The position numbers and the translations under genes are program-made. A stretch of 64,000 nucleotides of DNA from Vitrella brassicaformis CCMP3155 (lineage: Eukaryota; Protista; Chromerida), in assembly GCA_001179505.1 (NCBI GenBank), contig CDMY01000164.1:1-64000 (forward strand). Direction: 5' to 3'. The notes under the pieces were generated by a model. That model was given only the letters and a program-made list of their open reading frames with translations, ran no database searches and was not told where the DNA came from. Positions 90-60,860 of the stretch are shown one piece after another; within the stretch, counting starts at the first letter, position 1, and each line of letters begins with the position of its first letter.

Positions 90-1780
90 GTCACTCGGTG
101 GTGCCAGTCACCTCAGTCGACGTACCAGACGGCTTCTTGGGAGCCGATGAGCTGGAAGCTCGATTCCCTTACGGCACCAGCGACGTTACCAAGTCGCTGG
201 CAGTGGGCGTCCTCGGCCGCACCATCCCCAGCCCACAGCACGTGACCGACCTCATCCAACAGGGAGCCAACCCCAATATCAAGCCTCAGCTGAGGAAGAA
301 GGGCAGCAAGGTTGATGGGTTCGGCTACTCGCTGCTTACTCTTGCTGTCCACGACAAGGCAGACAACACCTTCTCGGCCATCCACGCACGCCAGGATGAT
401 GACGATGATGATGATGATGATGAGGGTGATGAGTGCCGCGTGGTCCTGCCGCAGTGGCCGTCTGATGAGCTGCAGGCGGCCATCATGAAGGCACTCATCG
501 ACGGAGGTGCAGACGTCAACGCGACATACAGGGACGCCGCCAGCAGGCCCATCTGGGTGACCATCCGATGCGGCAATGAGGCTGCCTTCAAGCTGCTAAT
601 GGCGCAGGGTGGCATCGACCTGGAGAGCATCTTCCTGATGGCGCTGCCCCCATCGCTGCATCCGATTCTCCCGCAGTATCAAGAGGTGCAGCTGTCGATG
701 TTTCGGCACCTCATCACACGAGAGCCCACCCTCGCCACCGAACGGGCCAACGGCGGCAACCTGGTGCACCACGCGGCCGGATATGCGTGGGGCCACCACT
801 CCCAGTCCTTCATCGACACCTACCTCGACCTCATCACGGCGAACGGGGCCGACATGACGGCAGACGATGGCGGCCTTGGGGAGACGCCACTGCACTACGC
901 GGCAGTGTATGGCTCTCCCTACGTGGCCGACTACCTTTGCCGCAAGCTGCCCGCTGACCAGATCAACAGACGGGACGGAGTCGGCGAGACGCCCCTCAGC
1001 AAGGCTGCCGAGATGCTCGATCACCGCACCCAACAGCTGCAGCTCCCCGACACACCCGAGGTCACCAGGGAGCGGTGGCGCGCCAAGATTGACGACTTCA
1101 AGCTGGCCATCCGCACCCTGCTGCGGGCGGGTGCCGACATCACCACCATCCCCACCATCCCCACCATCCCCACAGCCACAGAAAAGGACCGCCGTCAGCG
1201 CCAGCTGGTGCTGACGGAGTACCCCACGGTGCTCAACGAGCTGCCCACTGCCGTCATGTCGGCCGTCAACGCCGCCCTCGCCCCCCACCGCTCCCTCGCG
1301 GCCCTCCTGACCCCCCGGCTGGCCGTCGGCCCGCAGGAGGCCGCCATCTTCGGCTGGCGCATCGCGTCATACCTCTTCGACATGGATGCCGCCAAGGAGG
1401 CCATCGGTGAGGCCATCGGTGTGCGGCACACCGACATGGCCCGGCGTGTGTGTGCGGCAGCGGAGCACTTCGTCCGCTCGGCAGTGTACCAGGCCAGTAG
1501 CAACAGGGAGGTGGTGGGCGGGACGGCCGATGTGGGCGGCCAGGTGGTGCGTGTGCCGCAGCTGCAGTGCTTTGTGGTCGGCGGTGTGGGCGGCCGCAAG
1601 ATGGAGTTGCGTGAGGTGGTGCAGCGGGCCATCGTGGACGAGGCGGCCAAGTGGGGGCTGACGGGGGAGATCGACAACGGCTTCAGCAAGAATGTGGCTG
1701 CGGTGGTGTGGGGGGCGGTGGGGTGGGTCGAGAGGGGGCGGGACGGGAGGGAGACATTCAGATCGCTGCAGCTGACATGA
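90..1780 (+). CDS. Ankyrin-repeat protein, copy ANK-1 (large terminal exon; 5' exons lie outside the window)
   Basis: ORF 56..1780 has ankyrin motifs (GADVNA, GETPLHYAAVYGSPYVADYL, GETPLSKAA) and the family C-terminal domain LVLTEY...GWRIASYLFD...FRSLQLT. The acceptor cccaccag|G at 89/90 matches the same junction in the other four copies. Confidence 0.85.
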
Positions 1781-2802
1781 GATGCGGACACACAGATTTG
1801 GGTGGCAGGCAGGTTTTGGTTGCTGTTTTTTTTTTCTATTCCAACATTGCCGTGTGGTGTTTTCCATGACGTGCTGTCATCGCTCAGTATCCGTTTCTTT
1901 TATGGCGCGTTATGATGACGCGTAACATGAATGTATGTATGTGCGTGTGTGTGTGCGTCTAGTGCTTCGGTGTCAATTGACTTTTTAAGTACATCAGTCC
2001 AACACCACAGCTCTCCGCGCACGATGCAGTGAAGAGAAAAGGGCCACGAGAGAGTGACGCAGTCAGGCAGCGATCTTGCGGCTTGGGCGCTGCACGATGA
2101 ACTACCGTTGACTACGCACTGCTCACACACATACACGCACAGGCAATGACAAACCAAACGATCACTTTTCTTGGCGGATAAGCCGTTCGTGTGTGTGGTT
2201 CGAGGTGTGGTGTGCGTGTGCAGGAATGGACTTTTTGCCGACGTTTTTATGTACGGACGGGTCGATCGAGTGAAGGTGTGGACGAAGTGATACACACGCC
2301 ATGGCCATGAACCCATCCATATTCTCGTGAACGCATCCATCAGCCATATGCACAATGTAGGTCGGCACACCCACGAGAGAGACATGGGAGAAGTCCCTCC
2401 ACACGCACAACACACACGTGCACGCTCATATGCACATAGTTCCCGCCCGCCCACAAGCAAGCCAGCCGGCAATCTCTCTCAACCAATTCACCTGCAGGCA
2501 GCAGGTGAGGCGTCACCGTGTGAATGAATGAATACACGATGACGTCTCTCCACCCGTCTGCCTGCCTGCCTGCCTACCTGGCTGCCTGTCTGCCTGCCTC
2601 TTACCCGCCCGGCCCCCTCTCTCTGCACCAACGCGTATGTCTCACGACACCGCCCCCATCGTACCGGCCAACCAGCAGCGACAGCCATCCATCCATCCAC
2701 ACCAGAACCCCCCCACCTGCCTCCGTCCCTCATTCATCTATGTCATCCACTACTCCTCCATCGCATCGTCACCGCCGCTGTCCAAACGCGCCTCCGAGTC
2801 AG

Positions 2803-4987
2803 CTACTGGAATGCGGCCCCCAGCTGCTGCCATGTGAACTTGCAGTCGGCATCTCCCAGGTGGGTGTTGAAGCCCTTGGCCACCGCACCGTCCGCCAGCC
2901 CCCACTTGGCCGCCTCGTCCAGCCTGGCCCGATGCACCACCTCACGCAGGCCCACACGACCACGAGTGTGCACCGCCTCGCGCGGACGGCTGTCGACACC
3001 CTCGAGCACGAAGCACTGCAGCTGCGGCACACGCACCACCTGGCCGCCCACATCGGCCGTCCCGCCCACCACCTCCCTGTTGCTGCTGGCCTGGTACACT
3101 GCCGAGCGGATGAAGTGCTCCGCTGCCGCACACACACGCCGGGCCATGTCGGTGTGCCGCACACCGCTGGCTTCCTCTGTGATGGCCTGCTGGGCGGCAT
3201 CCATGTCGAAGAGGTATGACGCGATGCGCCAGCCGAAGATGGGGGCCTCCTGCGGGCCGACGGCCAGCCGGGGAGTCAGGAGGGCCGCGAGGGAGCGGTG
3301 GGGGGCGAGGGCGGCGTTGACGGCGGCCATGACGGCAGTGGGCAGCTGGTTGAGCACTGTGGCATACTCGGTGAGCACCAGCTGGCGTCCACGGCGACGG
3401 TCCTCTGTGGCTGTGGGGATGAGATTGATGTCGGCACCCGCCCGCAGCAGCGAATGGATGGTCAGCTTGTAGTTGGGAATCTCAGCGCGATGCCGCTCCT
3501 TGGTTTGCTCGGGTGTGCCCGGGTCCTGCAGCCGTTGGGTGTACCAATCGAGCTGTCTGGCAGCCATGACGATGGGCGTGTCACCGTGGTAGTTCCGTCT
3601 GTCGATCTGGTCAGCGGGCAGCTTGCGGCAGAGGAAGTCGGCCACTTGGGGAGAGCCAGACACTGCCGCGAAGTCCAGTGGCCACTCCCCAATGAGGTCG
3701 TCCTCTGCTGTCATGTCGGCCCCGTTCGCCGTGATGAGGTCGAGGTAGCTGTCGATGAAGGACTGGGGATAGAGCCCCTTTGAGTCAAAGGCTGCCCTGT
3801 GCACCAGGTTGCCGCCGTTGACCCGTTCGGTGGCGAGGGTGGGGTCTCGTCGGGCGAGTCGCTCATACATCGACATGAGCACCTGCGGATACTCGGGGGG
3901 AGGCGGACGCAGGGGACGGCAGCTCCATCACCATGCGTGGGCCTTCTGGTACGCGCAGGTCGATGTCTTGACGAGCCATCAGCGGCTCGAAGGCCGTCTG
4001 GTTGCCATACGCAATCGCCACTTGGAGTGGCGTGCCTATTCTCTCCAAGTCGCCGGCTGCCGCATTGGGGTCGGCTCCTCCGTCGAGGAGTGCGGTGAGG
4101 ATCGCCGCCTGCAGCTCGTCAGACGACCACTGGGGCAGGGCGACGGGACGGATGACAGCATGACTGTCTTCTGCTTTGACAGTCCGGATGGTGTAGCCCG
4201 ACTTGTTGTCAATGGCGATGGCGAGGAGCGAGTAGCCGTAGACGGCACCACTGCTGCCCCTGCCCACCAGCCCAGTGATGACATCCGGGTCGGCGTCCTG
4301 CTCGATGAGGTCGGTCACTTGCCGTGCGTCGGTGATGCGGCGGCCGATGATCCACCGTGACAGCTCCCTGGTGGCGTCGCTGGTGCCCTCGGGGAAACGA
4401 GCCTCCAGCTCATCGAGTCCGATATGGCCGTCAGGCACAGGAGCAGTGGGATCCGCCAGGTCACTGAGAGGATGACCTGTGACACACACAGCCACACACA
4501 ACGGACGGCGGTTGAATGTCATTGCGCACAGTATCCTCCCTCGCGTCTGTCTGGCGTACCTTCCTCCTCATATTCCCAGTCGTCGTCCGAGTCTCTGTCA
4601 TCGATATCGTCATCTTGGTCGTTATCATCATCCTCCTCCCACATGCCATCCTGACACACAACAAAGAGGCAAGGGAGAACAAACAACGTATGTGCCTCCA
4701 TCGCATGGACCAGTGTTGGTGTTGATGAGTGCCTCACCGATTCGTCTCCATTTCCTGCCTGCGGACCCTCACCACCGTCGGCCATCTCATCGGCCATCCC
4801 GTCGTCCTGCTGCTGCTGGTCGCCTGGACACCAACACACACACACACATGGCATGAGTGTGCTGCTGGTGTGTGTGTGCGTCGAATGGTGTGTGTGGCAG
4901 GTCTGATCACTCACCGCTGTCTGCGCCATTGCGATCTGAGTCCTCCGCCTGTCCACTGCCGCTATGCTCCTCCTCAGCTACATCGTC
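2803..4987 (-). pseudogene. Ankyrin-repeat protein ANK-2, frameshifted (pseudogene or assembly error)
   Basis: Two overlapping frames (3863..4522 and 2803..3882) together give one family member. A 2-nt deletion at ~3918 (gacggcagct vs gacggggcagct in ANK-5) shifts the frame. Small acidic 5' exons at ~4560-4650, ~4737-4826 and ~4915-4987; start codon not resolved. The C-terminal tail differs from the other copies. Confidence 0.7.
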
Positions 4988-5583
4988 TGCACACACCACA
5001 AATGTACAGGAATGATATGATCCTGCGTGTTTGATGTCCTGCATCGTCCTTTCCACATCCAGCGCCTTCCATGGCAGCGCAGTGCATCTTGCCATCGTGA
5101 CCTCCAGACATTACTCACTCAGACACCAACAGCTGCACGGACCACGCACAGAGAGGCAACAAGAGGTGGCTTTGTGCCCGCGCTGTGGCGGTGTTCACCT
5201 TTGATGAGTCAATAGATGGCTGTGTAGAGGCGCTCCATCAGTCCGTGCTGCCTCGTTGGTAAAGCAGCTCTGCATTCCACATCATGGTGGCTCGTGCTGA
5301 ACCAACCAATTGATTGCTCACCGTTGGCGCACGCTGATCTATGGACGCTGATTCAGGTGAACCAGTGGTGAACCAAACTCAGCCGCACCTGGACAACTCC
5401 CGACCGAAAAAGAGAGTGGTCCTCCACTCTTCTGCAGCGTCAGCTCGCACTTCGTGGGGGCCTGACTCCACTGCCATCCTTTTCGGCTGTCCCAAGGTTC
5501 TCTGGTGGGTTTCCGCCTACCACCCGGCTTAAGACCTGGGCTGTTTCATAGAAAGCAACTGGAAAGAAGACTTGAAGCCTTTC

Positions 5584-8564
5584 ATGGTGGTGTCTCCCGT
5601 GTCGTCGGCGCGTGGGCTGATGACGGGCCCTAACATGGTTTATGCCGCCATGGGGACCTTCCTGGCGGCCTGCGCCATCGCGGGCCTGGCCACATCGTCT
5701 GGCGGGGTGCTGCTCTTCACCTTCACTCTGGCGGCCCTGCTGGTGGTGGGGGAGCTGCTCTACTCAAAGTTCCTGGCGAGAAAGGTCTTTGGGATCAGGC
5801 CGGGTGAGCCGGTGCCCAGCAAGGACCCGGCGCACCAGGGCAATATCGACTACCATGCGTCCGACCCCTTCCTGCTGTTCGGACACCATTTCACCTCAAT
5901 CGGTGAGTGAGCCAAGTGAGCAGCGAACAGCGTGGCTGCGTGAGGATGTCTGTGTGTGTGTGTGTGTCTTGGCGATGCAGCTGGTGCGGCTCCCATTGTG
6001 GGCCCGTCGATAGCGATGTACTACGGCTGGCTGCCGTGCCTCATCTGGATTGTCGGAGGGGTCATCTTCGCCGGAGCTGTCCATGACTTCGGCGCACTCG
6101 TCCTGGCCACAAGAAACAAAGGCGAGACTCGCCAAAACGAGAATTCAGCACGTGCAGACAGGAGAGGAATTATGCCCTAACTGGCTGCCTGCCTCTGTCC
6201 CTTCTGTCAGGCCGTTCTATCGGAGACATGTGCGGCATCATTCTGTCTCCGCGGTGTGGTATCCTCTTCTTGTGCCTGCTATCTTTTCTGACTTGGCTGC
6301 TGATAGCGGTGTTCGTCAACGTGATAGCCAAGCTGTGGATCGACTTCCCGGAGACCGTTCTGCCAGTCAACGGACAGATACTGGTGGCAGTGGCTGTGGG
6401 GGTGCTCTGGAGATATAAGAAGCAGCAGGTGGGCATCTTCTGGCCATCGGTTGTGGCACTTGTGGCACTCTATGTGCTCATCTGGCTGGGAGTCGCCGTC
6501 GATGAAAGGTAAGCCTCGACCAACCGAGAGAGTGGGATGCATCGACGAGCCTGTTTGTTTATGGTGTCAGGTTCGATCACCCCTTCCAAGTGGTGCGGGG
6601 CTCGATTTGTCGAAACGCAGTGATGGAGGAGGGCTGCGAGTTCGGCGCACAGCAGGTGTGGACAATTGTCATTGGGGTCATCATCTTCGTCAGCAGCCTG
6701 CTGCCCGTCTGGCTGCTCGTCCAGTCCAGGAATGCCATCAACGCACTCCAGCTGGAAACCTGCATGTGAGCCATCTTGTAGCAGACTTTCAAGCGCCCAC
6801 CAACATCCATCTGTGCGTCAGGCTGGGTCTCTTCATCGGTCTGCTGGTGGTCAGTCCAAGTATCAATGCCGATGTAGTGCGGTCGGCCGAGACCAAAGCC
6901 ACTGAGGCGTCGCTGGGTGGCGGAGAAGGAGACCCTCTGTTCCCCATGCTGTTTGTGACCATTGCCTGTGGGGCCGTCAGCGGCATACATGGGCTCATTG
7001 GATCCATGTGAGCAAGAGACCCACACACACACGCATTATGCTGGAGTGGTTACCTGTCTGTCTGCGTGTCTCAGAGTGACCTCCAAGCAATTATCGTCGA
7101 CAACCCACGCCCGCCCCATCGGCTACGGTGGCATGCTCGGCGAAGCAGCTCTCGCAGCGCTCGTGACCACCATCTGTGCAACAATGGTCAGTGAATTTCA
7201 ATCGTGGCACCCATGCTGTCTGCCTGCCGCCACATCCATGCCCTTTCCCTCCCAGGTGACGTACAGCGACGCTTATGCCACGTGGAAGGATGCGTCAGGG
7301 ACCGGGCAGAACAACTTCGTCCACGGCGGTGGGGCGCTGTTGGCGTCTCTGGGCATTCCCGTTGCTGCGTCTCGATCCGTTGTGGTTGTCATGGTCGTGG
7401 CATTCGCCTCAACCTCACTCGACACATACGCTCGTACGGGAAAAGGGGAGGGGGCGACGCACAGACAGCTTTCTATGTGTGTGAATGTGCGGCTCAGGTA
7501 TGCAGCGCATGCTGATAGCTGAAGTGGGCGACACAATCGATCAACTTGTGTATGGGAAGCAGACCGACTCGCCCGTCTCCGTGTGGAAGAGGCCAGTGAG
7601 GGTGCTCACCCGGGCATTTCAGCATCCCTTTGTCGGCTGCACCTTGGCTGTTGTGCCGGCGATCTTCCTGGCCAACTCCCGGACAGTCGACTCGCTGTGG
7701 CAGCTGTTTGGCGCGACCAACCAGATGGTGGCCGCTCTCAACCTTCTCACGGTGAGCGATGAGACATGGACAGGGATGATATCGTGCGGATCTGAAGAAT
7801 GGCTCGTCCATGTGTGTGCAGATAAGTGTTTATCTCTTGCGGCTGACGTCGTCCCCATGGAAAGCCCTGACCTACTTCGCGCCCTTCATTTGGCTGTTTG
7901 TCATGACCAGCTGGGCTCTGCGGGTCAGCGACTTGAATTGAGACCTCCAGCCTCATCTCTGTGCACATGTGTTGGTCATCTATGCGTCTCCAGGTCCAGC
8001 TGTCGAGTTGGTTGACCGCTCCTAGACTGGGCGCCTCCGATTGGCTTGCTATCATTATCGGCTTTCTCATCGCATGTCTGGTGGCGTGGATCGTGCTCGA
8101 GGTCGCACTTTGGATCGCACAGGGAAAATACAAACACGACAGCAGGTATGCGAATGGCTGTCCAACGTATGCCCACAGTTTTAACGATCCTCTCTACGTG
8201 TGATTTATGCAGGTTCATCTGTGAGGATGAGGATGGCCGTGTTGGCACATACAAGATGACTAAGAATGGCATTCCACCAGCTGTCGAGACTCGTTCTGCC
8301 GACTTTCCAGCCAAGAAATCGTCTTCTGTGATCGAAAGCGACGCTGGCGACGGATGCAGCACTTCAGCACCCCGCGCCATGTCCAAACAGGATGGTTCGT
8401 TTGTAACTCAGCCGAGCATCTCCATAGAGAGACAGTACGATACAGAAGCAGCAGGGGAGGAGGACGACTTCGATTGCGGCGACGCGTGCGAAGAAGAGGA
8501 GGCCACGCGGCGTGTCAGGGCCTTCTTCGAGAGGGCCGCTGAGCACGGCATGGCCTGTTGCTAG
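5584..8564 (+). CDS. cstA: Carbon starvation protein A (CstA)-family peptide/pyruvate transporter, copy 1; 11 exons
   Basis: Spliced translation contains CstA hallmarks [58 protein letters not shown](I)[12 protein letters not shown] and [15 protein letters not shown]. Introns at about 5903-5980, 6122-6210 (GC donor), 6509-6570, 6766-6821, 7008-7074, 7187-7255, 7434-7497, 7752-7821, 7924-7993, 8146-8212. Confidence 0.9.
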
Positions 8565-8565
8565 G
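5615..8565 (+). repeat. Left arm of ~3 kb inverted duplication (CstA gene)
   Basis: Reverse-complement match to 11629..14520 from ggctgatgacgggccc to the stop codon; identity is patchy. Confidence 0.9.
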
Positions 8566-11628: not shown

Positions 11629-14520
11629 CCTAGCAGCAGCAGCCGGTGCCGTGCTCAGCGGCCTTCTCAAAGAAGGCCCTGACGTACCGCGTGGCCTCCT
11701 CTTCTTCGCACGCGTCGCCGCAATCGAAATCGTCCTCCTCCCCTGGTGCCTCTGCATCGTCCTGCCTCTCTAGGTCCTCCTTGGTGGTGCCGGAGATGCT
11801 GGGCATGCTCGGCTGAGACAGGAAGGAACCCTGCTGGTTGGGCAGCGCCATTGGGGGCGAGGTGCTGCAACCGTCGCCGAGGTCGCTCTCGATCGCTGAT
11901 GCGGACTTTTTCGCCGGGAGATGGGTGTCAGAGTTGGGAGTGCCGTTCTTAGTCATCTTGTATGTGCCCACACGGCCATCCTCGTCCTCACAGATGAACC
12001 TGCACCACTCGCACGGCACGTGCATCTGTATGTGCGGGGCAGACAGTGCCTCTTCGTGCACTTCACTCCCCACCTGTGGTCGTGTTTGTATTTGCCCTGT
12101 GCGATCCAGATGGCGACCTCGAGTACGATCCACGCCACCAGACATGCGATGAGAATCCCCACGATAATGGCCAGCCAATCGGAGGCGTCCAGGTCAGGAG
12201 CCGATAGCCAATTGGACAGCTGGACCTGCGAGCACATTTCCAAGAGGTGACAGGGCAGGTGAGAGTCTCTGTTTCTGTGGCTGACCCGCAGAGCCCAGCT
12301 GGTCATGACAATCAGCCAGACGAAAGGAGCGAAGTACGTCAGGGCTTTCCATGGGGATGATGTCAGCCGCAACAGATAAACACTTATCTGCACACACATG
12401 GACGAGCCATTCGTCAGATCCTGCCGATATCATCCCTGTCCATGTCCCATCGCTCACCGTGAGAAGGTTGAGAGCGGCCACCATCTGGTTGGTGGCGCCA
12501 AACAGCTGCCACAGCGAGTCGACCGTCCGGGAGTTGGCCAGGAAGATCGCCGGCACAACAGCCAAGGTGCAGCCGACAAAGGGATACCTAAGCGCCCGGG
12601 TGAGCACCCTCACTGGCCTCTTCCACATCGCCACGGGCCCATCGGTGGCTTGCTCCACGTGAACAACTCGGTCGATCATGTCGCCCACTTCAGCGATCAG
12701 CATGCGCTGGATGCGTGTGCACGTGTCGAGTGTGGTTGACGCGAACGAGACGACCATGACGACCACGACCGCCCGCGATGCGGCCACGGGAATGCCCAGA
12801 GACGCCATCAGTGCCCCGCCACCTCGGATAAAGTTGCTCAGGCCCGTCCCCGACGCATCCTTCCACGTGGCGTAAGCATCGCTGTACGTCACCTGGCAGG
12901 GAAAGGGGCATGAGTGTGGCGGCAGGCAGACAGCATGAAAGAGAAGGACCCCGGAGACATCCGTGGTGTCTCGATTGAAATTCACTGACCATTGTTGCAC
13001 AGATGGTGGTCACGAGCGCTGCAAGGGCCCCTTCGCCGAGCATGCCACCGTAGCCGATGGGGCGGGCGTGAGTTATCGACGATAATTGCTTGGAGGTCAC
13101 TCTGAGACACGCATACAGACAGGTAACCACTCCAGCATAATGCGTGTGTGTGGGTCTCTTGCTCACATTGATCCGATGAGCCCATGTGCACCGCTGACGG
13201 CCCCACAGGCAATGGTGACGAACAACATGGGGAATAGAGGGTCGCCCTCTCCACCACCCAGCGACGCCTCAGTGGCTTTGGTCTCGGCCGACCGCACTAT
13301 GTCGGCATTGATACTTGGACTGACGACCAACAAGCCGATGAAGAGGCCCAACCTGACGACACACAGACCAAAGAGACGTGGATGGCTGTGCACATCTTGA
13401 GGTCTCCTACATGCAGGTTTCCAGCTGTAGGGCATTGATGGCGTCTCTAGATTGCACCAGCAGCCAGACGGGCAGCAGGCTGCTGAAGAAGATGATAACC
13501 CCAATAACGATTGTCCACACCTGCTGCCCGCCGAAATCGCAGCCCTCCTCCATCACTGCGTTTCGACAAATCGACCCCCGCATCACTTGGAAGGGGTGAT
13601 CGAACCTGACACCACAAGCGCACAGGCCCGTCGATGCATCCCACTCTCTCGGTTGGTCGAGGCTTACCTTTCATCGATGGCGACTCCCAGCCAGATGAGC
13701 ACATAGAGTGCCACAAGGGCGATCACCGACGGCCAGAAGATGCCCACCTGCTGCTTCCTATATCTCCAGAGCGCCCCCACGGCCACTGCCACAAGAATCT
13801 GTCCGTTGACGGGCAGAACGGTCTCGGGGAAGTCGATCCACAGCTTGGCTATCACGTTGACGAACACCGCTATCACTTGCCAGGTGAAGAAGGATAGCAG
13901 GCACAAGAACAGAATGCCGCATCGGGGGGACAGAATGATGCCGCACATGTCACCAATGGAACGGCCTGTCACCAATAAGATGTACTCCGTGTCTGGGGTG
14001 GCTTATTGCGCTAATCGGTACCTTTGTTTCTTGCGGCAAGGACGAGTGCGCCGAAGTCATGGACAGCTCCAGCGAAGATGACCCCTCCGACAATCCAGAT
14101 GAGGCAGGGCAGCCAGCCGTAGTACATCGCTATCGACGGGCCCACAATGGGAGCCGCACCAGCTGCATCGCCAAGACACACACAGACATCCTCACGCAGC
14201 CACGCTGTTCGCTGCTCACTTGGCTCACTCACCGATTGAGGTGAAATGGTGTCCGAACAGCAGGAACGGGTCGGACGCATGGTAGTCGATATTGCCCTGG
14301 TGCGCCGGGTCCTTGCTGGGCACCGGCTCACTCGGCCTGATCCCAAAGACCTTTCTCGCCAGGAACTTTGAATAGAGCAGCTCCCCCACCACCAGCAGGG
14401 CCGCCAGAGTGAAGGTGAAGAGCAGCACCCCGCCAGACGATGTGGCCAGGCCCGCGATGGCGCACGCAGCCAGGAAGGTCCCCATGGCGGCATAAACCAT
14501 GTTCGGGCCCGTCATCAGCC
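11629..14520 (-). repeat. Right arm of CstA inverted duplication
   Basis: Reverse complement of 5615..8565. Confidence 0.9.
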
Positions 14521-14557
14521 GACGCACCAAGCCCTTGACACCGTCGGCAGACTCCAT
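11630..14557 (-). CDS. cstA: CstA-family transporter, copy 2; 10 exons
   Basis: Same motifs as copy 1 on the minus strand ([22 protein letters not shown]... to ...[12 protein letters not shown]). Lacks the intron that copy 1 has at 7434-7497. Confidence 0.9.
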
Positions 14558-20300: not shown

Positions 20301-20361
20301 CGCGTCCCACCCACCCCCACCAAGCCACTACGGAACTGACTATGGCTGCCCTAAGGGTCTG

Positions 20362-25768: not shown

Positions 25769-26068
25769 NNNNNNNNNNNNNNNNNNNNNNNNNNNNNNNN
25801 NNNNNNNNNNNNNNNNNNNNNNNNNNNNNNNNNNNNNNNNNNNNNNNNNNNNNNNNNNNNNNNNNNNNNNNNNNNNNNNNNNNNNNNNNNNNNNNNNNNN
25901 NNNNNNNNNNNNNNNNNNNNNNNNNNNNNNNNNNNNNNNNNNNNNNNNNNNNNNNNNNNNNNNNNNNNNNNNNNNNNNNNNNNNNNNNNNNNNNNNNNNN
26001 NNNNNNNNNNNNNNNNNNNNNNNNNNNNNNNNNNNNNNNNNNNNNNNNNNNNNNNNNNNNNNNNNNNN
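25769..26068. other. Assembly gap (300 N)
   Basis: 300 N flanked by poly-C. Confidence 1.
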
Positions 26069-38051: not shown

Positions 38052-40282
38052 TCACGTCATCCGCAGCGACCTGAAGCTCACCCTGCCATCCCGCCCCTTC
38101 TCGACCCACCCCACCGCCCCCCACACCACCGCAGCCACGTCCTTGGTGAAGCCGTTGTCAATGTCCCCCACCAGCCCCCACTTGGCGGCCTCGTCCAGGA
38201 TGGCCCGCTGCACCACCTCACGCAACTCCATCTTGCGGCCACCCACACCGCCCACCACAAAGCACTGCAGCTGCGGCACACGCACCACCTGGCCGCCCAC
38301 CTCGGCCGTCCCACCCACCGCCTCCCTGTTGCTGCTGGCCTGATACACTGCCGACTTGACGAAGTGCTCCGCTGTGGCACACACACGGCGGGCCATGTCG
38401 GTGTGCCGCACGCCGATGGCCTCACCGATGGCCTCCTGGGCGGCATCCATGTCGAAGAGGTATGACGCGATGCGCCAGCCGAAGATGGGGGCCTCCTGCG
38501 GGCCGACGGCCAGCCGGGGGGTCAGGAGGGCCGCGAGGGAGCGGTGGGGGGCGAGGGCGGCGGTGACGGCCGCCATGACGGCAGTAGGCACCTCGTTGAG
38601 CACCGTGGTGTACTCGGCCAGCACCAGCTGGCGGCGACGGCGGTCCCTCTCTATGGCTGTGGGGATGGTGGTGATGGTGGTGATGCTGGTGATGTCGGCC
38701 CCCGCCCGCAGCAGGCTGCGGATGATCAGCTTGAACTTGCCACTCTGGGCGCGATGCCGTTCCGTGGTGGCCTCGGGTGTGTTTGGGTGCTGCAGCTGTT
38801 GGGTGCGGCAGTAGAGCTCGTAGGCAGCGACGGAGAGGGGTGTGAATGACGTTGTGAGTGTCCGTCTGTCGATCTGGTCAGCGGGCAGCTTACGGCAGAG
38901 GTAGTCGGCCACCTTGGGGGAGCCATACGCTGCCGCGCGGTGCAGTGGCGTCCATCCAATGCCATCGGCTGCCGTCATGTCGGCCCCGTTCGCCGCTATG
39001 AGGTCGAGGTAGGCGTCGATGAAGGACTGGGGATAGTGCGCATTTGAGTTGAAGGCTGCGTGGCGCACCGGGGTGTAGCCATAGCGTTCTTCGGTGGCGA
39101 GGGTGTGGTCTCGTGCGATGAGTTGCTCATACATCGACAGCAGCAGCTGCAGATACTCGGGGGGAGGCTGACACAGGGTGAGGGGCAGCGCCATCACCGT
39201 GCGTGAGCCTGGTGGGCGCAGGTCGATGTCGTGACGAGCCGTCAGCACGTCGAAGGCCTCCTGGTTGCCGCATCGGATGGTCACTCGAAGGGACGTCTGC
39301 CCGGTCTCATCGGCTTCCGCATTGGGGTCGGCTCCTCCGTCGAGGAGTGCGGTGAAGATCTCCGCCTGCAGCCCAGCAGACGACCACCGTGGCGGGGCGA
39401 CGGGACGGCAAGCATCATCGTCTCCTGCTTCGATGGTCAGGACGGTGTAGTCCGACTTGTTGTCGATGACGATGGCGAGGAGCGGGTAGGGGAACCCACG
39501 ATGCTTGCTGCCCTTCTTCCTTAGTCGAGGCTTGATATTGGGGTTGGCTCCCTGCTCGATGAGATCGGTCACGTGCTGTGCGCTGGGAATGGTGCGGCCG
39601 ATGACGCCCAATCCCAGCGACTTGGTAACGTCGCTGGTGCCGTAAGGGAATCGAGCCTCCAGCTCCTCGGCTCCCAAGAAGCCGTCTGGCACGTCGACTG
39701 AGGTGATTGGCACCACCGGGTGACCTGGGGCGACAAACACAGCCATCAGACGACGCACACCGACAACGAATGCATGTATGGGCCCGCACCTCCCTCTCAT
39801 CTGTCTGTCTGTCTGTCTGTCTGTCTGGCGTACCTTCCTCCTCATAGCCATCGTCATGACCGTCGCTGTCTGAGTTATTGTCGTTGTCCCCCTCACTGTA
39901 ATCGATCTCGTCGTCTTGGTCTTGGTCTTCGTCCAGCACCCCTCCGTCGTCACTGTCGTCCTGCATACCACCGCCCTGACACAGCGACACAGAGGCAACG
40001 GGAGAACAGCCAGGTGACGAGCGTCACATGGACGGACAGAGAGTCCATGAATTAATGCCTCACCGATTCGCTCCCATCGGCCATCCCACCGCCCTCCTCA
40101 CTGTCTCCACCTGAACACAATCAACCACAGGCACACACATCGACACAAATCAAGTGCTGCGGCGTTCGGTGCTGACCGTCAGGCTCATCGCCGCTCTGGA
40201 GTTGCTGCACGGCGTCGACGTCCATCGGGGGCTCCGCGGTGCCCTGCTGCTGCTGCTCAGCTGCTGGTTGTCGTGCGGCCAT
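38052..40282 (-). CDS. Ankyrin-repeat protein ANK-3 (intact; 4 exons)
   Basis: Exons at about 40282-40177, 40113-40062, 39976-39830 and 39724-38052. Ankyrin motifs and family C-terminal domain; open frame throughout the large exon. Confidence 0.85.
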
Positions 40283-40590
40283 GAGCGGGGCTCTGTGTGC
40301 ACACAGAGAGAGGGCCTCACTGCCGCCACTTGACGACCTGACAGTGACACACACACAATGAGAAATGAGGGCCCTTCCTCCACCGACGACGCCCTTGCTC
40401 CTTGCCGCCTGCCCACGTACCTTCTCGTGTCCTCTTCGGACGCCCTGGCCCTCACCTCACACAGATACGCACAGATCTGCCGCCCTGGACCCACGAGTCA
40501 CGATAAGACGGAAATTTGGGGATGCCCGTGGTGTGTTGAGGTGCCTGAACGCTCCACTGGCGGGGATCTCTGCCCATCCCCCGCGCACTT

Positions 40591-40628
40591 CTTAGCTCGC
40601 CCTGTAGGGTGTAGGGTTCAAACCCTAA
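40591..40628 (+). promoter_or_regulatory. CTTAGCTCGC motif plus telomere-like/B-box-like palindrome TAGGGTT-CA-AACCCTA
   Basis: Lies between divergent genes ANK-3 and ANK-4. Same element at 61162-61198; variant AGGGTTCGAGCCCT + CTTAGCTCGC at 48550-48575. Regulatory role is inferred. Confidence 0.4.
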
Positions 40629-41268: not shown

Positions 41269-43578
41269 ATGTCTGAGTCTCACGGCATCGGCATGCCCTC
41301 TGCTGCCACGGCGGACGGTGACGGTGGCGATGCAGGTACACCACAACCAATTACATCCCGCCACATTCCTTCGTGTGGTTGTCGTTGTCCGTTTCATTGT
41401 GTCTGCAGGCGACGTAGACGAGAAGGGGCATGGCGGCGGCGGACCAGCAGAGGACGACAATCGCAATGGCATCGGTGATAGTGGTGAGTGACTGACAAAT
41501 CATGCCACATAGACCAGTCGACACACCAGCAGCACAGCACACTGATGTGTTCTCTGTCGGTGCGTCGCCTGTGTCTGTGGTCAGACGAGCAGCAGAAGGA
41601 GGAGGGCGGGGTGGCCGACGAGGAGCCAGGCCCTCAAGCAGCAGCAGCAGCTGAGAGCGAACCGGTGAGGCACTCATTCATGAACACACTCCCCGTCGAT
41701 ATGATGTCCGTCACCTTGCCCCTTTGTGGCGTCGGGATTCCATGCAGGAGGATGGTGCTGGTGCTGGCGACGACAGTGAGGAGTCAGATGAGTACAGTGA
41801 CTCATCCGGCGACGACAGTGAGGTGGCGTACGAGGAGCATGGTACGCCTGACAGACAGATGTGACAATGCTATACACACACACTCGCTATGTGCCCGCCT
41901 CGTGTGGTGGCTCTGTGCACCGCAGGTCATCCTGTGGTGGCGGCCACTGGCGTGACTGTCCCTGAGGGCTGGGCGGGCCCCAGTGAAATCGAGGTCCGCT
42001 TCTCCCCCGGCACCACCGAGGCCACCAAGCAGCTGGGGCTGGGCGTCATCGGCCGCACCACCATCGACCCACGCCAAGTGACCGACCTCATCCAGCAGGA
42101 AGGAGCCGACCCAGACGTCATGCCTCGGCTGCGGAAGAAGGGCAGCAAGTGTCGTGGCTGCGCCCACTCGCTGCTTTGTCTCGCCATTGACAACCTGTTA
42201 GACCATGCGATACCGACCATCCGTGCAAATGCGGAGCGAGACTGGGTCTTCACCGGCCGTCCCGCTGTCCTACCGCGGTGGTCGTCTGCTGGGCTGCAGG
42301 CGGCCGTCATGACGGCACTCATCGACGGAGGCGCCGATATCAACGCGATAGACCCCTACACGGAAATCGAGGACAGGCCCCTTGGAGTGGCGATCGCATC
42401 CGGCAACGCGACGGCCTTCGAGCTGCTAATGGCGCAGCCCGGCATCGGCCTGCAGGGGCACAGGGTGATGTGGCTGCGCCAACCGACAAGCTCCCTTCCC
42501 CCCGAGTATGTGGATGTGCTCATGTCGATGTATGAGCGCCTCATCCGAGAGGACCCCACCCTCGCCGCCGAACGAGACAGGGGCAGCAATCTGATGCACA
42601 TTGCCGCCTGGCGGGCGCGGGGGCTCTACCCCAAGTCGTTCATCGACAGCTACCTAGACCTCATCACACAGCACGGGGCCGAGATGACGGCAGTGTGCGC
42701 TGGAGGGACACCACCGCACGACGCGACAGATTGGGGCTCTCCCTACGTGGCTGACTACCTCTGCCGCAAGCTGCCTGCTGAGCACATCGACAGATGGAAC
42801 GATTCCCCTCACCGGCTCGAGAGCAGCACGTCCATCGAAATAGCTGCCGAGAAGCTCGATGACAACACCCGACGGCTCCAGCTCCCCGACACCCGAGGAC
42901 ACCAAGGAACGGAATCGCGCCGAGAGTGACAGGTTCAAGCGGATCATCCATTCGCTGCTGCGGGCGGGCGCCGACATCAATCAGATTCTCACCCCCACAG
43001 CCACAGAGTGGCGCTGCCGTCGTCGCCAGCTGGTGCTGACCGAGTACCCCACGGTGCTCAACGAGGTGCCCGTTGCCGTCATGTCGGCCGTCAACGCCGC
43101 CCTCGCCCCCGCCGTCGGCCCGCAGGAGGCCCCCATCTTCGGCTGGCGCATCGCGTCATACGTCTTCGACATGGACGCCGCCCAGGAGGCCGTCAGTGAG
43201 GCCATCGGTGTGCGGCACACCGACATGGCCCGGCGTGTGTGTGCGGCAGCAGAGCACCTCGTCAAGTCGGCGGTGTACCAGGCCAGCAGCAACAGGGCGG
43301 TGGTGGGGGGGTGTGGGGGGGCGGCGGATGTGGGCGGCCAGGTGGTGCGTGTGCCGCAGCTGCAGTGCTTTGTGGTGGGCGGTGTGGGCGGCCGCAAGAT
43401 GGAGTTGCGTGAGGTGGTGCAGCGGGCCGTCCTGGACGAGGCGGCCAAGTGGGGGCTGACGGGGGCGATCGACAACGGCTTCAGCAAGGATGCGGCTTCC
43501 GTCGAGTGGGGGGCGGTGGGGTGGGTCGAGAGGGGGCGGGACGGCAGACAGATGTTCAGGTCGCTGCAGTTGACGTGA
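41269..43578 (+). pseudogene. Ankyrin-repeat protein ANK-4, frameshifted
   Basis: Exons at about 41269-41335, 41409-41483, 41590-41664, 41748-41843 and 41926-43578. A 2-nt deletion at ~42890 (cccgacacccgag vs cccgacacacccgag in ANK-1) splits ORFs 41889..42929 and 42859..43578. Also a 36-nt in-frame deletion of HRSLAALLTPRL. Confidence 0.7.
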
Positions 43579-47800: not shown

Positions 47801-48297
47801 TGTGTGTCGTGTGTAGCTCTCTGTGTACCTTCTTGCTAACATCCCACACCTGCAGACAGACAAGCATGCGCACCGAAGAAGGTCATTCAGCGGGGCATCC
47901 AAGGAGCTTTTTGTTGGTTGAGGTGTGCTTGCCCACCACGGGTGGCTGTGGGTTGGTGTTTATTGGCGCGCTGGTCCGATGCGGCACCACCTGTTTGAAC
48001 TCCTCCCGGCCGCCGACCTCCCGCATGAAGAGCAGCGTCCCTTTGCTGGTCTCCTCGGTGCGATGGACGTCGGCTTTGACCCACACATAGCTCTCATTGG
48101 CACCCCTTCTGGTGCCCGACGTCAGCAGCACACGAGTGCCCTTCCGGTGGCGACCAGCCGACGAACACGATGCCATGACCTAACGAAACAAACAAAGCAA
48201 TGAGTGAATGGATGAATCATTCGTGTGCTGTGCCTTCTCTCACCTCTGCCTGAGGAGGCGAAGCAGCAGATGAAGCTGAAGCTGCCGCTGCTGCCAT
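44886..48297 (-). CDS. Lineage-specific protein B1: small beta-rich N-domain, F-box-like motif, FG-rich low-complexity insert, degenerate LRR-like C-domain; paralog of 61485..>64000
   Basis: Exon 1 MAAAAASASSAASPPQAE and exon 2 are nearly identical to B2. Contains FGDDLLASLVSFMTPRELSTILP and QQTHLSIDSSTDADRHFWASMTRKEAFQLGKRLPNLTAL. Possible frameshift at 44901-44904. F-box and LRR calls are by eye. Confidence 0.6.
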
Positions 48298-49123
48298 GGC
48301 GTGACGCAAACACGGCTGGCGAGAAGAGCACAGAGGTGTGCACCACTCTTGTCATGCATTCTCGTCGTTGACGTGCTGCCTACCGACGAGAACCGAACCG
48401 ATGGCCTCTCTCTCAGCCGAGGCTCCTATCGAGGAGGCCGACCTCGCCAGGACACTCACGAGCGAGCGCTTATCTGCTGCAACACGCGGATCTGCGCACC
48501 AACTCCTTGCACGCGCTAAACTGTCATGAGGGAGGGTTTGGGGAACGACAGGGTTCGAGCCCTTTCTTAGCTCGCCTGCGAGGTGGAGGAACCCTTCCCT
48601 CATTCTCCCCTCGGCGGGCCTCTTTTTATTCATTCTTGCGCAATTGTTCTTGTGTCCCATGGAGGATGGATGCACCGAGGACGCAGCAGGTACGCACCAC
48701 CGGCGCAAACAGATCTGTTACTATTTCGAGCCAATAGCACATCGGCTGGTGTCCTGGTTGCTGTCAGGGTGGCGGTAAGGCGTTCAGCGGCCTCCGCAAA
48801 GGATTCCTGAGCGGAGGTGTCGGGTCCGAGGAGAAGCGCCACGGCCCTCACACAGGACAGATCAGATGCGGGTAGGTGGCTGCAGGCAGCAGGCTGGGCA
48901 CTGCCAGGTAAGAACAGCTTCTCTCATTGGCTGCCTGCGGAATTGGGCACGCATGAGGCAGGGCGACACGCAAGACGAGGTGAGAAAAGGCAGACGGACA
49001 TCTGGCAGATACATGATGCCATGTCATGTCTGGTTCGTCTCTCGCTTTCTACCCAGAGTGTCAAAGTGTTTGCGACGCAACCAGTGTGAGCAGGCATTCA
49101 ACTAGCACACAACGCACACACCC

Positions 49124-52100
49124 ATGACCCAGTTGCTCGTGTCTGCCAGCAGGACTGCAGATGACGAGTATGGCACTAGCAGTGCTGAGGAAATGCGTCG
49201 GCCCAACATCCCCTTCACGAGCAAAACACAGCCCAAGAGCGGCGGCAGGAAGGCGGCCAACGCCGGCAAGCCCCACCGGCTCGTTGATGCACTCGGGAGC
49301 GACCCCTGGACATCTGACAGCCAGCATGCGAGCCGCGCAGCCGAGAAAGAGAGCGTCCAGCAGCTGCTGATCGAGCAGGAACGACGTGAGATAGACGTCA
49401 CAGCCAAAAAGAAGGGCGACAGCAACACCCACACCAAGGCGCCTGAGCCTGCAGCACAGCAGAAAGGAGCCGCCAAGCCCAAGACCGAGACCCAGCCAAA
49501 GGGTGCCGCCAAGACGACGGCTGCAGGGGGGGTTGATGGCGACACGGCATGCAAGCTTCGGCAGCTCGTTGAGGCACTCAAGGGGAATGGTGGCCCTCGG
49601 GAGATCCTTGCCATCCAGCAGGCCCGTCAGCTGCTGAAGAAGGCGGAGGAGCCCGTGAAGAAGGCAGCCAGGGAGGCCGGCATGATCCCGGCGCTGGTCA
49701 AGTGCCTGGCGGCCTTGAGTCGTCGACCCGACCAGTGCTTGGCATCGTATCGCCTTCAAGTCGAGGTGCTGACGCAGGTGGGCGACCTCGTCGGGATTGG
49801 CACCCTCGTCGGAGGGCACCAGAAGCAAGTCGTGGACGCGGGTGGCATCCCCATCCTCGTCAAGCTGGTGTCCTCAAAGGACGGAGATCTACTGCTGGCG
49901 GCGGCATGGATGCTTGGTCTGGTGACCGGCAGCCGCTCTGAGCATCGCGACACTGTGCTGAAGGAGGGCGGCCTGTCGCCATTGCTGCAACGGATGGAAG
50001 ACCTTACCCCCGAGGCCGACCCCCTTGGGATGGTCCGTACTGCTGTTTTGGGCTTCGTTCGACACAACCAGCTCCCGCCCCTGCAGCTGATGGAGCCATC
50101 CCTGCCCCTGCTGGCACAGATGGTCAACGGCAGCAGCAGCGCCGCGACGCTCCATGTCGTATGCGCGATCGTCTTTGAGCTCAGCGAGGGAGGCAATGAC
50201 GACATCGACGCAGTCGTTCGGATGGGGGTCTGTCCGCGCCTGGTGGAACTCATGAAGTGGACCTGTCCAGGCGACCGCTTTGAGAGGGAGTGTCATGCGC
50301 TGGCAGTCATGACTGTCAGAAACGTCGCCGGGGGTGAGCTCAAGGCGGCGGGGTACGTGCCTTCCTTGCCTGTGGTCTGTATGCGCGCGTGCTTCTGTGT
50401 GTGTGCTTGCAGGTGCGAACCGGCACAGGGATGCCGTGTTGCAATGCGGTGCGCTCGCGCCCATGCCGCAGCTGCTGACGTCAGGCGTCACGTACGCGTA
50501 TCGTGTGATGGAGCCCGAAGACGCGATCAGCGAGTTTGCAATCCAGACCCTCGGCAACATCATGGCAGGTAGCCGTCGAGCATGGACTCACACAGGCAGA
50601 CAGACAGACAGACAGACAGACAACAGAGGGCTTATGGCCTCACTTGTATGTCTGTTCCCGCTGTCACCAGGCAACAGTAGCCACACACAGAAGGTCATCG
50701 ACGCGAATTTGATGCGGCCTCTTCTGAAAGCTCTGACCAGTGCTGGGCCAGCCGTGAAGAAAGAGACCGCGCGCGCTCTCGCCAACGCCACCGAACAGGT
50801 CAGCAGCAGCAACAGCAGACAAGGGGGCAGCGAACGGCAAGGAGTCATCCTCTGTCTCGCCTCTTGTTTCCGTGTGTGCAGGTCCGTCATTTGGGCAAGT
50901 GTGGGTTCGTCAAGTCGCTGTGCGATGTCCTGAAGACCACCGATGACGCCGACATAGTCAAGATGGTGCGTGGGGCCCTGCAGAAGAGCATGCCGCACAG
51001 CAGAGATGACATACGGGCCGCAGTCCACCAACGTGATATGCCGGATAAGGTAAACATCGAATGCACGGGATATTATCATCGTGTCGTGTAGCTGGCTCGT
51101 CGTGTTTTTATCGATTCAGGAGCGCCTCTTTCTGAAGAGCATCCCCAACAAGGCCAGCAAGGCACAGGACTTCACCAAGTCACCATCGTCGGCAGCCGAG
51201 TATGCCGAGGCTCAGCGCATCGCTGACGAGCTGATCGAGGAGGAGCGGCGGGCAAAATCGAAACAGACCAAGAAGAAGGGTGGGAAGGCCAGCAAAGGCA
51301 ACAAGGTGCAGGAGCCTGCAGCAGAGGATATCGATTCTTCTGGGCGCACCACTGCCGCATCCAACAAGTGAGCAAGAGGACAAGAGGCCTGCTGATTCTC
51401 CTGTATGTGCATTTCTGCCGTCGTGCGTGTGTTGTGTGTATGCAGCCGATCCTCCTTTACCATCTACTATGAGGAACTTCCGACACCGCCCTCTTCATCC
51501 AGTGCAGACACGTGGGCGAGCGACGCGTATTCACGTGCACCCATCAAGTCATTTCCCTCTTGTCTGCCTCGGTCCGCAGGATTTCGCTTGCCCTCGCCGC
51601 TGCCAGCGAGCAGCAGGATGGTCAGGCGGGTGTGTCGGCAGCTGGCCGAGTGGAGGAGAACGACAGCAACGGCGCCACCTGGGCCAAAAGATGGCGCCGA
51701 CGCAAGGACAAGAAGCGGCAGGGAGGCGAGGGGCCTCAGGATGCCGGCGAGCCATGTGATGCGACGCTGGGTGGGGGTCTGTCCATGGGCACTGAGGATG
51801 TGCGAGCCCGGGAGGAGATTGATGCGGTGCCAAGAAGGTGAGAGAACGATGGGCAGTGCACGATAAACATGTGGGTGTTTTTCTGATGCGGGAGTGAGGA
51901 GAAGGATTCTGACGATGTGCTGATGCCCATGCCGTCATCTTCGTCCAGTGCCCCTCCACCGGCCGCACAAAGGTCGGCCGACCAATGGTGCACACGCGTC
52001 ATGAATTCGTGCAGCTGAATTGTATCGCCTGGATGCACACATGTGTGCAGTTTGACTGTCGGCGATGAGGATCATGAGCTGCAGCTGGCGATTGCTGCAT

Positions 52101-58367: not shown

Positions 58368-60860
58368 TCATGTCAGCTGCAACGACCTGAACGTCTCCCT
58401 GCCGTCCCGCCCCCTCTCGACCCACCCCACCGCCCCCCACTCGACGGAAGCCGCATCCTTGCTGAAGCCGTTGTCAATCTCCCCCGCCNNNNNNNNNNNN
58501 NNNNNNNNNNNNNNNNNNNNNNNNNNNNNNNNNNNNNNNNNNNNNNNNNNNNNNNNNNNNNNNNNNNNNNNNNNNNNNNNNNNNNNNNNNNNNNNNNNNN
58601 NNNNNNNNNNNNNNNNNNNNNNNNNNNNNNNNNNNNNNNNNNNNNNNNNNNNNNNNNNNNNNNNNNNNNNNNNNNNNNNNNNNNNNNNNNNNNNNNNNNN
58701 NNNNNNNNNNNNNNNNNNNNNNNNNNNNNNNNNNNNNNNNNNNNNNNNNNNNNNNNNNNNNNNNNNNNNNNNNNNNNNNNNNNNNNNNCCTGAAGCCGTT
58801 GTCAATCTCCCCCGCCAGCCCCCACTTGGCCGCCTCGTCCAGGATGGCCCGCTGCACCACCTCACGCAACTCCATCTTGCGGCCACCCACACCGCCCACC
58901 ACAAAGCACTGCAGCTGCGGCACACGCACCACCTGGCCGCCCACATCGGCCGTCCCGCCCACCACTTCCCTGTTGCTGCTGGCCTGGTACACCGCCGAAC
59001 GCACCAAGTGCTCCGCTGCCGCACACACCCGCCGGGCCATGTCGGTGTGCCGCACACCGATGGCCTCACTGATGGCCTCCTGGGCGGCATCCATGTCGGA
59101 GAGGTATGACGCGATGCGCCAGCCGAAGACGGGGGCCTCCTGCGGGCCGACGGCCAGCCGGGGGGTCAGGAGGGCCGCGAGTGAGCGGTGGGGGGCGAGG
59201 GCGCCGTTGACGGCCGACATGACGGCAGGGCCCACCTCGTTGAGCACTGTGGCATACTCGGTGAGCACCAGCTGGCGTCCACGGCGACGGTCCTCTGTGG
59301 CTGTGGGGATGAGATTGATGTCGACACCCGCCCGCAGCAGCGAATGGATGGTCAGCTTGTACTTGCCACTCCGGGCGCGATGCCGCCCCTTGTCGGCCTC
59401 GGGTGTGTCCGGGTCCTGAAGCTCTTGAGTGCGCCAATCGAGCTCCTCGGCAGCTATGGCGAGGGGCGTCTGAGTGTCCCGTCTGTTGATCTGGTCAGCG
59501 GGCAGCTTGCGGCAGAGGTAGTCGGCCACGTAGGGAGAGCCAGACTCTGCTGCGTAGTGCAGTGGCGTCCATCCAATGCCATCGGCTGCCGTCATGTCGG
59601 CCCCATTTGCCGTGATGAGGTCGAGGTAGCTGTCGATGAAGGACTGGGGGTAGTGCCCATTTGAGTTGATGGCTGCCTTGTGCACCAGGCTGCAGCCAGA
59701 CCCTTCTTCGGTGGGGAGGGTGGGGTCGTCTTGGATGAGTCGCTCATACATCGACATGAGCAGCCGCAGATGCTCGGGGGGAGGCGGACGCAGGGGACGG
59801 GGCAGCTCCATCACCGCTGCTCCGCGCACGTTGATGCCGTATCGAGCCATCAGCACGTCAAAGGCCGTTCGGTTGCCCAGTGCGATCGCCACCCACAACA
59901 AGGGCTTGCTGGCGGCGTTGATGTCGGCGCCTCCGTCGAGCAGTGCGGTCAGCACGGCCGCCTGCAGCTCGTCAGACGACCACTGGGGCAGGGCCACGAA
60001 GCGGCAAGCATCGTCTCCTGCTTCGAATTCCGCCGGGACGGTGTAGTCCGATTTGTTGTCGATGGTGATGGCGAGGAGCGGGTAGCCGAACCCACGATGC
60101 TTGCTGCCCTTCTTCCTTAGTCGAGGCTTGATATTGGGGTTGGCTCTCTGTTCGATGAGGTCGGTCACGTGCTGTGGGCTGGGGATGGTGCGGCCAATGA
60201 TGCCCAATGCCAGCGACTTGGTAACGTCGCTGGTGCCGTAAGGGAATCGAGCTTCCAGCTCATCGGCTCCCAAGAAGCCGTCTGGCACGTCGACTGAGGT
60301 GATGGGCACCACCGGGTGACCTGGTGGGGGACACACAGCCATCATACGACGCACACAGAGAACGAATGCATGTATGGGCCCGCACCCCCCTCCCTCCCTC
60401 TCATGTGCCTGTCCGTCTGGCGTACCATCGTCCTCATAGCCGTCGTCATAATCGTCGCTGTCTGAGTCACTGTCGTCGTCCCCCTCACCGTCATCGATCT
60501 CGTCGTCTTGGTCTTGGTCTTCGTCCAGCATCTCTCCGTCGTCACTGTCGTCCTGCATACCACCACCCTGACGCAGCGACACAGAGGCAACGGGAGAACA
60601 GCCAGGTGACGAGCGTCACATGGACGGACAGAGAGTCCATGAATTAATGCCTCACCGATTCGCTCCCATCGGCCATCACACCGCCCTCCTCATTGTCCTC
60701 ATCTGAGCACAATCAACCACAGGCACACACATCGACACAAATCAAGTGCTGCGGCGTTCGGTGCTGACCGTCAGGCTCATCGCCGCTCTGGAGTTGCTGC
60801 ACGGCGTCGACGTCCATCGGGGGCTCCGCGGCATTCTGCTGCTGCTTGTCGTGCGGCCAT
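58368..60860 (-). CDS. Ankyrin-repeat protein ANK-5 (4 exons; 3' end crosses a false gap)
   Basis: Same exon structure as ANK-3 (ATG at 60860). Open frame; sequence on both sides of the gap overlaps by 27 nt, restoring ...EIDNGFSKDAASVEWGAVGW...FRSLQLT*. Confidence 0.85.
58489..58788. other. Assembly gap (300 N) whose true size is probably negative
   Basis: ctgaagccgttgtcaatctcccccgcc occurs at both 58462-58488 and 58790-58816. Confidence 0.9.

Follow-up and report, generated by a model that had tools for sequence, protein, structure and literature searches.

Private repeat families with a diversifying binding face usually mark an arms race or the recognition of many targets, as in plant and fungal NOD-like receptors (NLRs), ubiquitin-ligase adaptors and variable lymphocyte receptors. 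The paratope of designed ankyrin repeat proteins (DARPins) is made up of defined positions on the surface of their internal repeats (PMC8683736), and in the ankyrin repeats of fungal NLRs positive selection has been described at inner helices and at the loops of beta hairpins, along with recombination and lineage-specific expansion (PMC4986451). Here we report on a family of ankyrin-repeat genes in Vitrella brassicaformis CCMP3155, five members of which (ANK-1 to ANK-5) lie in the first 64 kb of contig C164 (hereafter the window), in a genome of 72.7 Mb. V. brassicaformis is a coral-associated alga and belongs to the chromerids, the free-living relatives of apicomplexan parasites; the literature on Vitrella and ankyrin yielded neither a description of this family nor a paper describing such a system for chromerids. 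From N- to C-terminus, the encoded proteins consist of an acidic, disordered stretch, a head that is an irregular ankyrin solenoid with about six repeats, and an alpha/beta tail of about 200 residues. Positive selection diversifies the head, with a focus on the tips of the beta hairpins and on the exposed side of each repeat's first helix, where ankyrins canonically bind, and it acts in addition on some insert loops and long helices peculiar to the family; purifying selection acts on the framework residues and the tail. The best explanation of our data, which we consider somewhat probable, is a private and recombining repertoire of ankyrin adaptors or sensors whose targets would be numerous or changing and which all carry a constant tail.

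The five copies had first been recognised by their shared framework motifs, and in a six-frame motif search every peptide quoted for them was recovered, at five places. A self-comparison of the window gave 70-85% DNA identity among the copies across the entire coding region, and between the five the tail is 82-91% and the head 53-72% identical. ANK-1, ANK-3 and ANK-5 match the Pfam ankyrin family PF00023 with E=1e-8 to 1e-10 and 35-42 bits (cut-off 21.1; the Pfam Ank hit of ANK-1 has E=9e-11), ANK-2 falls under the Pfam ankyrin threshold and ANK-4 has no ankyrin hit. In each intact copy Pfam sees a single canonical repeat (residues 271-303 in ANK-1). The full-length AlphaFold model of ANK-1 (34 paralogues) has an overall predicted local distance difference test score (pLDDT) of 79.6, mostly above 85 in head residues 11-360 with a dip to 57 in an acidic insert at about 111-120, and shows about six helix-pair repeats, several of them with long insertions or elongated helices. 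When the head was compared with the PDB by Foldseek, 73 matches were obtained at E<=0.001, those listed being ankyrin-repeat proteins, RNase L among them, and the best were DARPins, AnkB (ankyrin-B) and FEM1B/FEM1C. Judged by both its Pfam score and its predicted solenoid fold, the head belongs to the ankyrin repeat superfamily.

Selection was analysed on 23 close copies, over 345 head codons and 167 tail codons. Under a maximum-likelihood codon model (kappa and F3x4), the head had an omega of 0.60 and the tail one of 0.29; Nei-Gojobori counting had put the head dN/dS at about 0.95-1.07, a value inflated by a third-position GC content (GC3) of about 0.8, and was kept only for ratios between classes of sites. 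In a site-wise grid test on the maximum-likelihood tree, the nonsynonymous rate beta exceeded the synonymous rate alpha at 23 head codons with p<0.05 and at 12 with p<0.01, and 27 head codons had a posterior above 0.9. Six null simulations of the head on the same tree, with 40% strictly neutral sites and none above 1, gave 3-8, 0-3 and 1-5 such codons, respectively, and the observed tail gave 3, 0 and 4. Purifying selection was significant at 108 codons of the head and 67 of the tail. When the head was split into three segments, each with its own tree, 26 selected sites remained, 22 of which were common to the single-tree run.

The repeat register was set from the first-helix starts in the model. 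Six positions in repeats 2-6, which we take to be those randomised in DARPin libraries (2, 3, 5, 13, 14 and 33 of the 33-residue repeat), then gave 30 predefined codons. Selected codons made up 8 of these 30 versus 19 of the 315 others (Fisher p=0.0009), and with the segment trees 7 of 30 versus 19 of 315; pooled omega was 0.94 for the predefined set versus 0.56 for the rest. By register position, pooled omega was 1.15-2.04 at 33/0, 1, 5 and 10 and only 0.66-0.87 at 3, 13 and 14, yet at the latter single codons in repeats 3, 5 and 6 had posteriors of 0.89-1.00; positions 6-9, 11, 12 and 15 were constrained. Pairwise counts that use no tree gave 1.56 for the predefined sites, 0.69 for the framework and 1.0 for the rest, the observed 1.56 being reached by 9 of 500 random sets of 30 sites. 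The pattern is plainest in R5, the canonical repeat of ANK-1, where the hypervariable codons are aa 270, 272, 280 and 281 (nt 875-877, 881-883 and 905-910), with posteriors of 0.92-1.00 for beta above alpha and up to ten residue types among the 23 copies, next to a T-P-L-H-x-A-A framework that is almost fixed. In a divergent subfamily of 15 copies (subfamily B), 4 of 27 predefined codons versus 2 of 310 others were selected (p=0.0004), and the site-wise posteriors correlated with those of the close set (Spearman rho 0.36); the six codons flagged there are near the null of 1-5, so that their positions alone are informative. Other strongly selected codons of the close set are found in the repeat-2 insertion (103, 106, 112 and 122), in the loop after repeat 3 (187 and 188) and in long helices (217 and 337). 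The first-pass annotation had placed the variation at the ankyrin binding positions and had predicted dN/dS above 1 at the variable sites. Both statements stand in part: the enrichment at the binding positions is significant and recurs in subfamily B, but many of the selected codons are in insert loops or long helices, and it is individual codons that exceed 1 beyond the null, not the class of positions as a whole.

The same annotation had described the C-terminal domain as nearly invariant in four copies and about 180 residues long; it is indeed a separate, conserved and family-specific module, but it is some 200 residues long and, with the identities given above, clearly better conserved than the head without being nearly invariant. 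In the full-length model it is poorly predicted (pLDDT 40-70). Modelled alone from a 62-sequence alignment that includes distant members, it reached a pLDDT of 89.3 and a predicted template modelling score (pTM) of 0.84, in a model where a 46-residue helix is followed by three further helices, a small sheet, one more helix and, at the terminus, a hairpin. The tails of 34 members gave no Pfam match even at E up to 10, and neither a profile search of PDB sequences nor a search of a viral structure library returned a match. With the whole domain as query, Foldseek found no fold match in the PDB (best E 0.67), an exhaustive comparison of structures over 48,161 chains gave generic helical bundles below the noise guide (best VIA Z 6.8), and the ESM Atlas held no meaningful neighbour; the description 'no known fold' holds for the tail as a whole domain. 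Two candidate functions were tried and rejected. An apparent resemblance of the tail start to an F-box was dropped, as Pfam at E<=10, the PDB profile search and two fold searches were empty and the stretch was modelled as one continuous helix of 46 residues. A catalytic Cys/His pair was discarded as well, because, in spite of a nearly invariant Cys134, His100 lacks conservation in the 62-sequence alignment, and matches to cysteine peptidases were weak (Z 4-5, Foldseek E about 3) and covered only the helices. In the members checked, the tail seems tied to ankyrin heads. One distant member on another contig (P0071, CEM29145.1) has a RING-like N-terminus (zf-C3HC4_3, E=8e-6, 26 bits versus a cut-off of 27), a divergent ankyrin-like middle and a genuine tail (hhalign probability 97.9%, E=4.5e-13).

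The two halves of the proteins do not share one genealogy. The head and tail trees have 1 of 20 splits in common, and the data of each half reject the tree of the other (delta lnL, the log-likelihood difference, 811 and 311; approximately unbiased test p=0.0009 and 4e-52), so the copies are mosaics and segments are exchanged between paralogues. Summed over the tree, dS is 3.6 for the tail and 5.1 for the head. Because of this lower dS and the discordant trees, exchange between paralogues contributes to the similarity of the tails, which are also constrained at the protein level, as their omega indicates. A tail insertion of 4-6 residues at alignment columns of about 150-165 (for example in copies L005, L010, L017 and L044) recurs in close copies of different head clades and in the distant subfamily, a visible footprint of such exchange.

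The window holds a small sample of the family. The ANK-1 protein matched its own genome at 91 places (of 362 first-look candidates), most of them open frames of 550-750 codons with 40-77% identity, clustered on few contigs (at least 14 on C200, 9 on C164 and 6 on C317), and all 20 divergent copies examined had uninterrupted frames. A profile of the tail alone found at least 151 genomic loci, all with E below 1e-39, a lower bound in that 150 of 277 candidates were scored; about 17 of roughly 150 listed tail matches contain stops. The five genes of the window are real paralogs, in a family with at least those 151 loci. Outside the genome, the tail profile hit 74 cluster representatives among 1.84 billion proteins. 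Ten were looked up, of which six are Vitrella proteins by name, three are metagenome or MMETSP entries without a name, two of them sharing a cluster with a Vitrella protein, and one is a weak hit to a bacterial MBG-domain protein that looks spurious. A word-based search returned about 100 Vitrella entries named 'unnamed protein product', a few short JGI/ENA contigs and MMETSP transcripts. Two MMETSP transcripts are 100% identical to distant family loci on other contigs, and some members are therefore transcribed. The family is clustered, evolves by birth and death and is, as far as the sequence collections reach, private to V. brassicaformis.

Coordinates in the window are collected in Table 1. 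In the database models an acidic low-complexity N-terminus of 60-130 residues is encoded by small 5' exons, which are spliced to one large exon that holds both head and tail and runs from a conserved 'GHP' to the stop codon; as queries for the sequence searches, single-exon references or database proteins were used. The annotated N-termini show no apparent signal peptide, which makes an intracellular location of the proteins probable. ANK-1 lies at the very start of the contig and its acidic 5' exons are for this reason missing from the assembly; the Met at its first listed position is the annotated start, the conserved core begins with 'GH' at the second (about 89), and an identical 570-aa protein is present in databases. 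The large exon of ANK-3 matches residues 142-698 of a database model at 100%, and its splice signals could be read from the sequence. In the self-comparison, similarity between copies ends about 15-40 nt past the stop codon and, on the 5' side, within the 5' exons and the upstream region. ANK-3 and ANK-5 are 85% identical in DNA well upstream of the coding core (38147-40627 versus 58791-61198), from which it follows that 5' exons and promoter regions were part of the same duplication.

Table 1. Family members and other features of the window (aa, amino acids; ORF, open reading frame).
Feature	Position	Strand	State or evidence
ANK-1	68/89..1780	+	large exon, intact; open frame
ANK-1 repeat R5 (aa 268-300), only canonical repeat	869..967	+	Pfam match
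ANK-1 orphan C-terminal domain (aa 368-570)	1169..1777	+	separate AlphaFold model
ANK-2	2803..4522	-	broken copy; frame changes between two ORFs
ANK-3	38052..39724	-	large exon, intact (ankyrin head + tail); 5' exons upstream
ANK-3 intron	39725-39833	-	GT-AG, 109 nt, with CAGA microsatellite
ANK-3 acidic exon	~39834-39975	-	matches residues 95-144 of database model
ANK-4	41889..43578	+	broken copy; small acidic 5' exons ~41269-41664
ANK-5	58368..60354	-	large exon split by assembly gap; open frame on either side
Gap inside ANK-5 tail	58489-58788		final 27 nt before gap reappear directly after it
Gap between family genes	25769-26068		15-nt left-flank suffix repeated at right-flank start; 200-nt flanks share 22 14-mers
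Inverted duplication, ~3 kb	5607-8562 and 11635-14528		79-86% DNA identity
ORF in one arm of the inverted duplication	12194-13000	-	match to bacterial-type carbon starvation protein CstA (PF02554, E=1.5e-10)
Second duplication, opposite orientation	45105-48318 and 61464-63683		66-79% identity
ORF between ankyrin genes	28959-29984	+	MORN repeat (PF02493, E=4e-5)
ORF between ankyrin genes	49124-50572	+	Armadillo repeat (PF00514, E=3e-16)

Two of the copies are broken. A DNA alignment with three other copies places a 2-nt deletion near 3920 in ANK-2, after which a premature stop follows at 3863-3865; the tail of this copy is the commoner C-terminal variant of the family. ANK-4 changes frame near 42890, its tail is short by 12 residues and its sole canonical repeat is degenerate, below Pfam detection. 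The database gene models bridge the defects of both with 'introns', and the two copies are accordingly either pseudogenes or assembly errors. One of the five assembly gaps of the window touches a family member, the tail of ANK-5, and the other four sit between family genes. Given the same 27 nt on both of its flanks, beyond which the ANK-5 tail continues, that gap probably represents two overlapping contig ends left unmerged and not missing sequence; with the overlap collapsed the frame would run on to the stop at 58368, and ANK-5 is thus probably intact. The other gap listed in Table 1 may be another unmerged overlap or lie inside a tandem repeat.

As for the remaining features, the inverted duplication appears, from its Pfam match, to hold a CstA-like transporter gene as an inverted pair in an alga. 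The second duplication adjoins ANK-4 and ANK-5; its arms have long ORFs without Pfam match and share a conserved block that looks broken by introns or stops.

Taken as a repertoire of adaptors or sensors, the family would work through a head that is very likely a variable recognition surface and that would recognise variable targets, a tail that would connect all members with a single shared partner or activity, for example in docking, oligomerisation or an effector complex, and an exchange of segments between paralogues. The idea of a diversifying repertoire on a constant domain had been put forward in the first-pass annotation, and it is supported by the excess of selection over the null, by its repeat in a second subfamily and by the conserved, separate tail. 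Several points weigh against it. The site tests are home-made, in the style of FEL and FUBAR (fixed effects likelihood; fast, unconstrained Bayesian approximation), and recombination, which can inflate such tests, is present in the data; some selected codons adjoin indels, where misalignment could inflate the signal. Pooled omega at the DARPin-type positions is about 0.9 and does not exceed 1, roughly two in three of the selected codons are found away from the canonical positions, and the binding face was assigned from the repeat register and not from solvent exposure. Two of the five window copies are frameshifted, the transcript collections searched hold no transcript for any of the five, and the tail searches yield no functional clue.

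A more specific version of the repertoire, in which the proteins are substrate receptors of a ubiquitin ligase whose head picks substrates and whose tail docks on the ligase, is possible but in our opinion unlikely. Among the structural matches of the head are two Cul2 receptors, FEM1B and FEM1C, P0071, the only member to hint at ubiquitin ligation, joins a RING-like N-terminus to a genuine tail, and the evolutionary pattern fits adaptively expanding ubiquitin-ligase adaptors, a pattern known from the F-box and MATH-BTB families of nematodes and plants. However, the tail has 200 residues where a 40-50-residue box would be expected, no F-box, PRANC, SOCS-box or BTB signature was found in it (Pfam at E<=10 in 34 tails, PDB sequences and fold searches), its F-box-like stretch was modelled as a continuous helix, and the link to RING is a single gene model below the Pfam threshold.

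We are also doubtful of a role as innate-immunity-like or allorecognition sensors (anti-viral, anti-parasite or self/non-self), which would make the family a functional analogue of the fungal NLRs. The signature is the same as in the ankyrin repeats of those receptors, namely selection, recombination and lineage-specific expansion, but it equally fits adaptors that have no immune role. Pfam found only ankyrin families in the full-length proteins and no P-loop family in the tail, which leaves the family without a NACHT, NB-ARC or other nucleoside triphosphatase (NTPase), and equally no death, TIR or known effector domain was seen; moreover, the repeats lack the high repeat-to-repeat similarity that is typical of fungal NLRs. 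A bolder form of this idea, which we regard as rather improbable, is an intracellular recognition system without NTPase, in which at least 150 ankyrin sensors with faces diversified by selection and exchange would be connected by the new tail to a single shared output (oligomerisation, degradation or cell death, for instance). If true, an alveolate near the apicomplexan parasites would possess innate immunity or non-self recognition built on a new architecture.

Relaxed constraint, in which the copies are decaying duplicates with a drifting head and a tail homogenised by gene conversion, seems very unlikely to account for the family. It would agree with the two frameshifted copies among five and the stop-containing tail matches, with a mean head omega as high as 0.6, and with a tail dS of about 70% of the head value together with the discordant trees, which indicate that copying between genes aids the similarity of the tails. 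Two of the five local copies may well be dying. Most copies, however, have open frames 550-650 codons long at 40-80% identity, purifying selection acts on the head and tail codons counted above and on the tail as a whole, and the codons with omega above 1 far exceed those in simulations with 40% neutral sites and occupy matching structural positions in the two subfamilies. The alternative of neutral duplication debris is rejected on these grounds for the whole family, with its mostly open frames and 108 constrained head codons. It seems unlikely, finally, that the genes are cargo of mobile elements or integrated viruses and owe their copy number to transposition, for despite the high copy number, the clustering, both orientations and the single large exon, DNA similarity ends at the gene borders, the self-comparison showed no shared terminal repeats or flanking element (no search aimed at transposase or reverse-transcriptase genes was made), copies diverge down to about 40% protein identity as in an old family, the introns are ordinary GT-AG ones with 5' exons, and the tail has no viral fold match.

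The repertoire of adaptors or sensors that we favour is a defined and testable candidate, the tail being a handle for the common partner and the selected head positions predicting the contact surface. In comparison with the known systems, an ankyrin head with a conserved C-terminal module is also found in the ASB/SOCS-box proteins, FEM1 and the poxvirus ankyrin-PRANC proteins, but the Vitrella tail bears no SOCS, F-box, PRANC or VHL-box signature and is four to five times longer. With the fungal NLRs, whose ankyrin, TPR and WD repeats are hypervariable, the Vitrella heads share the evolutionary pattern; they differ in that the family has neither a NACHT/NB-ARC NTPase nor a known effector domain at the N-terminus, repeats of the same protein are not near-identical, and the constant module is C-terminal and without fold match. 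The DARPins, finally, resemble the family in their ankyrin solenoid, as the top Foldseek matches of its head, and in that its fastest-evolving codons fall at positions randomised in their libraries. In contrast to them, the Vitrella family is natural and irregular, with one canonical repeat and others that have insertions of up to about 35 residues or elongated helices, many of its selected codons sit in the inserts, and the head is joined to an acidic N-terminus on one side and a 200-residue tail on the other. The family also offers a natural data set on how far the ankyrin scaffold tolerates surface diversification and large insertions.

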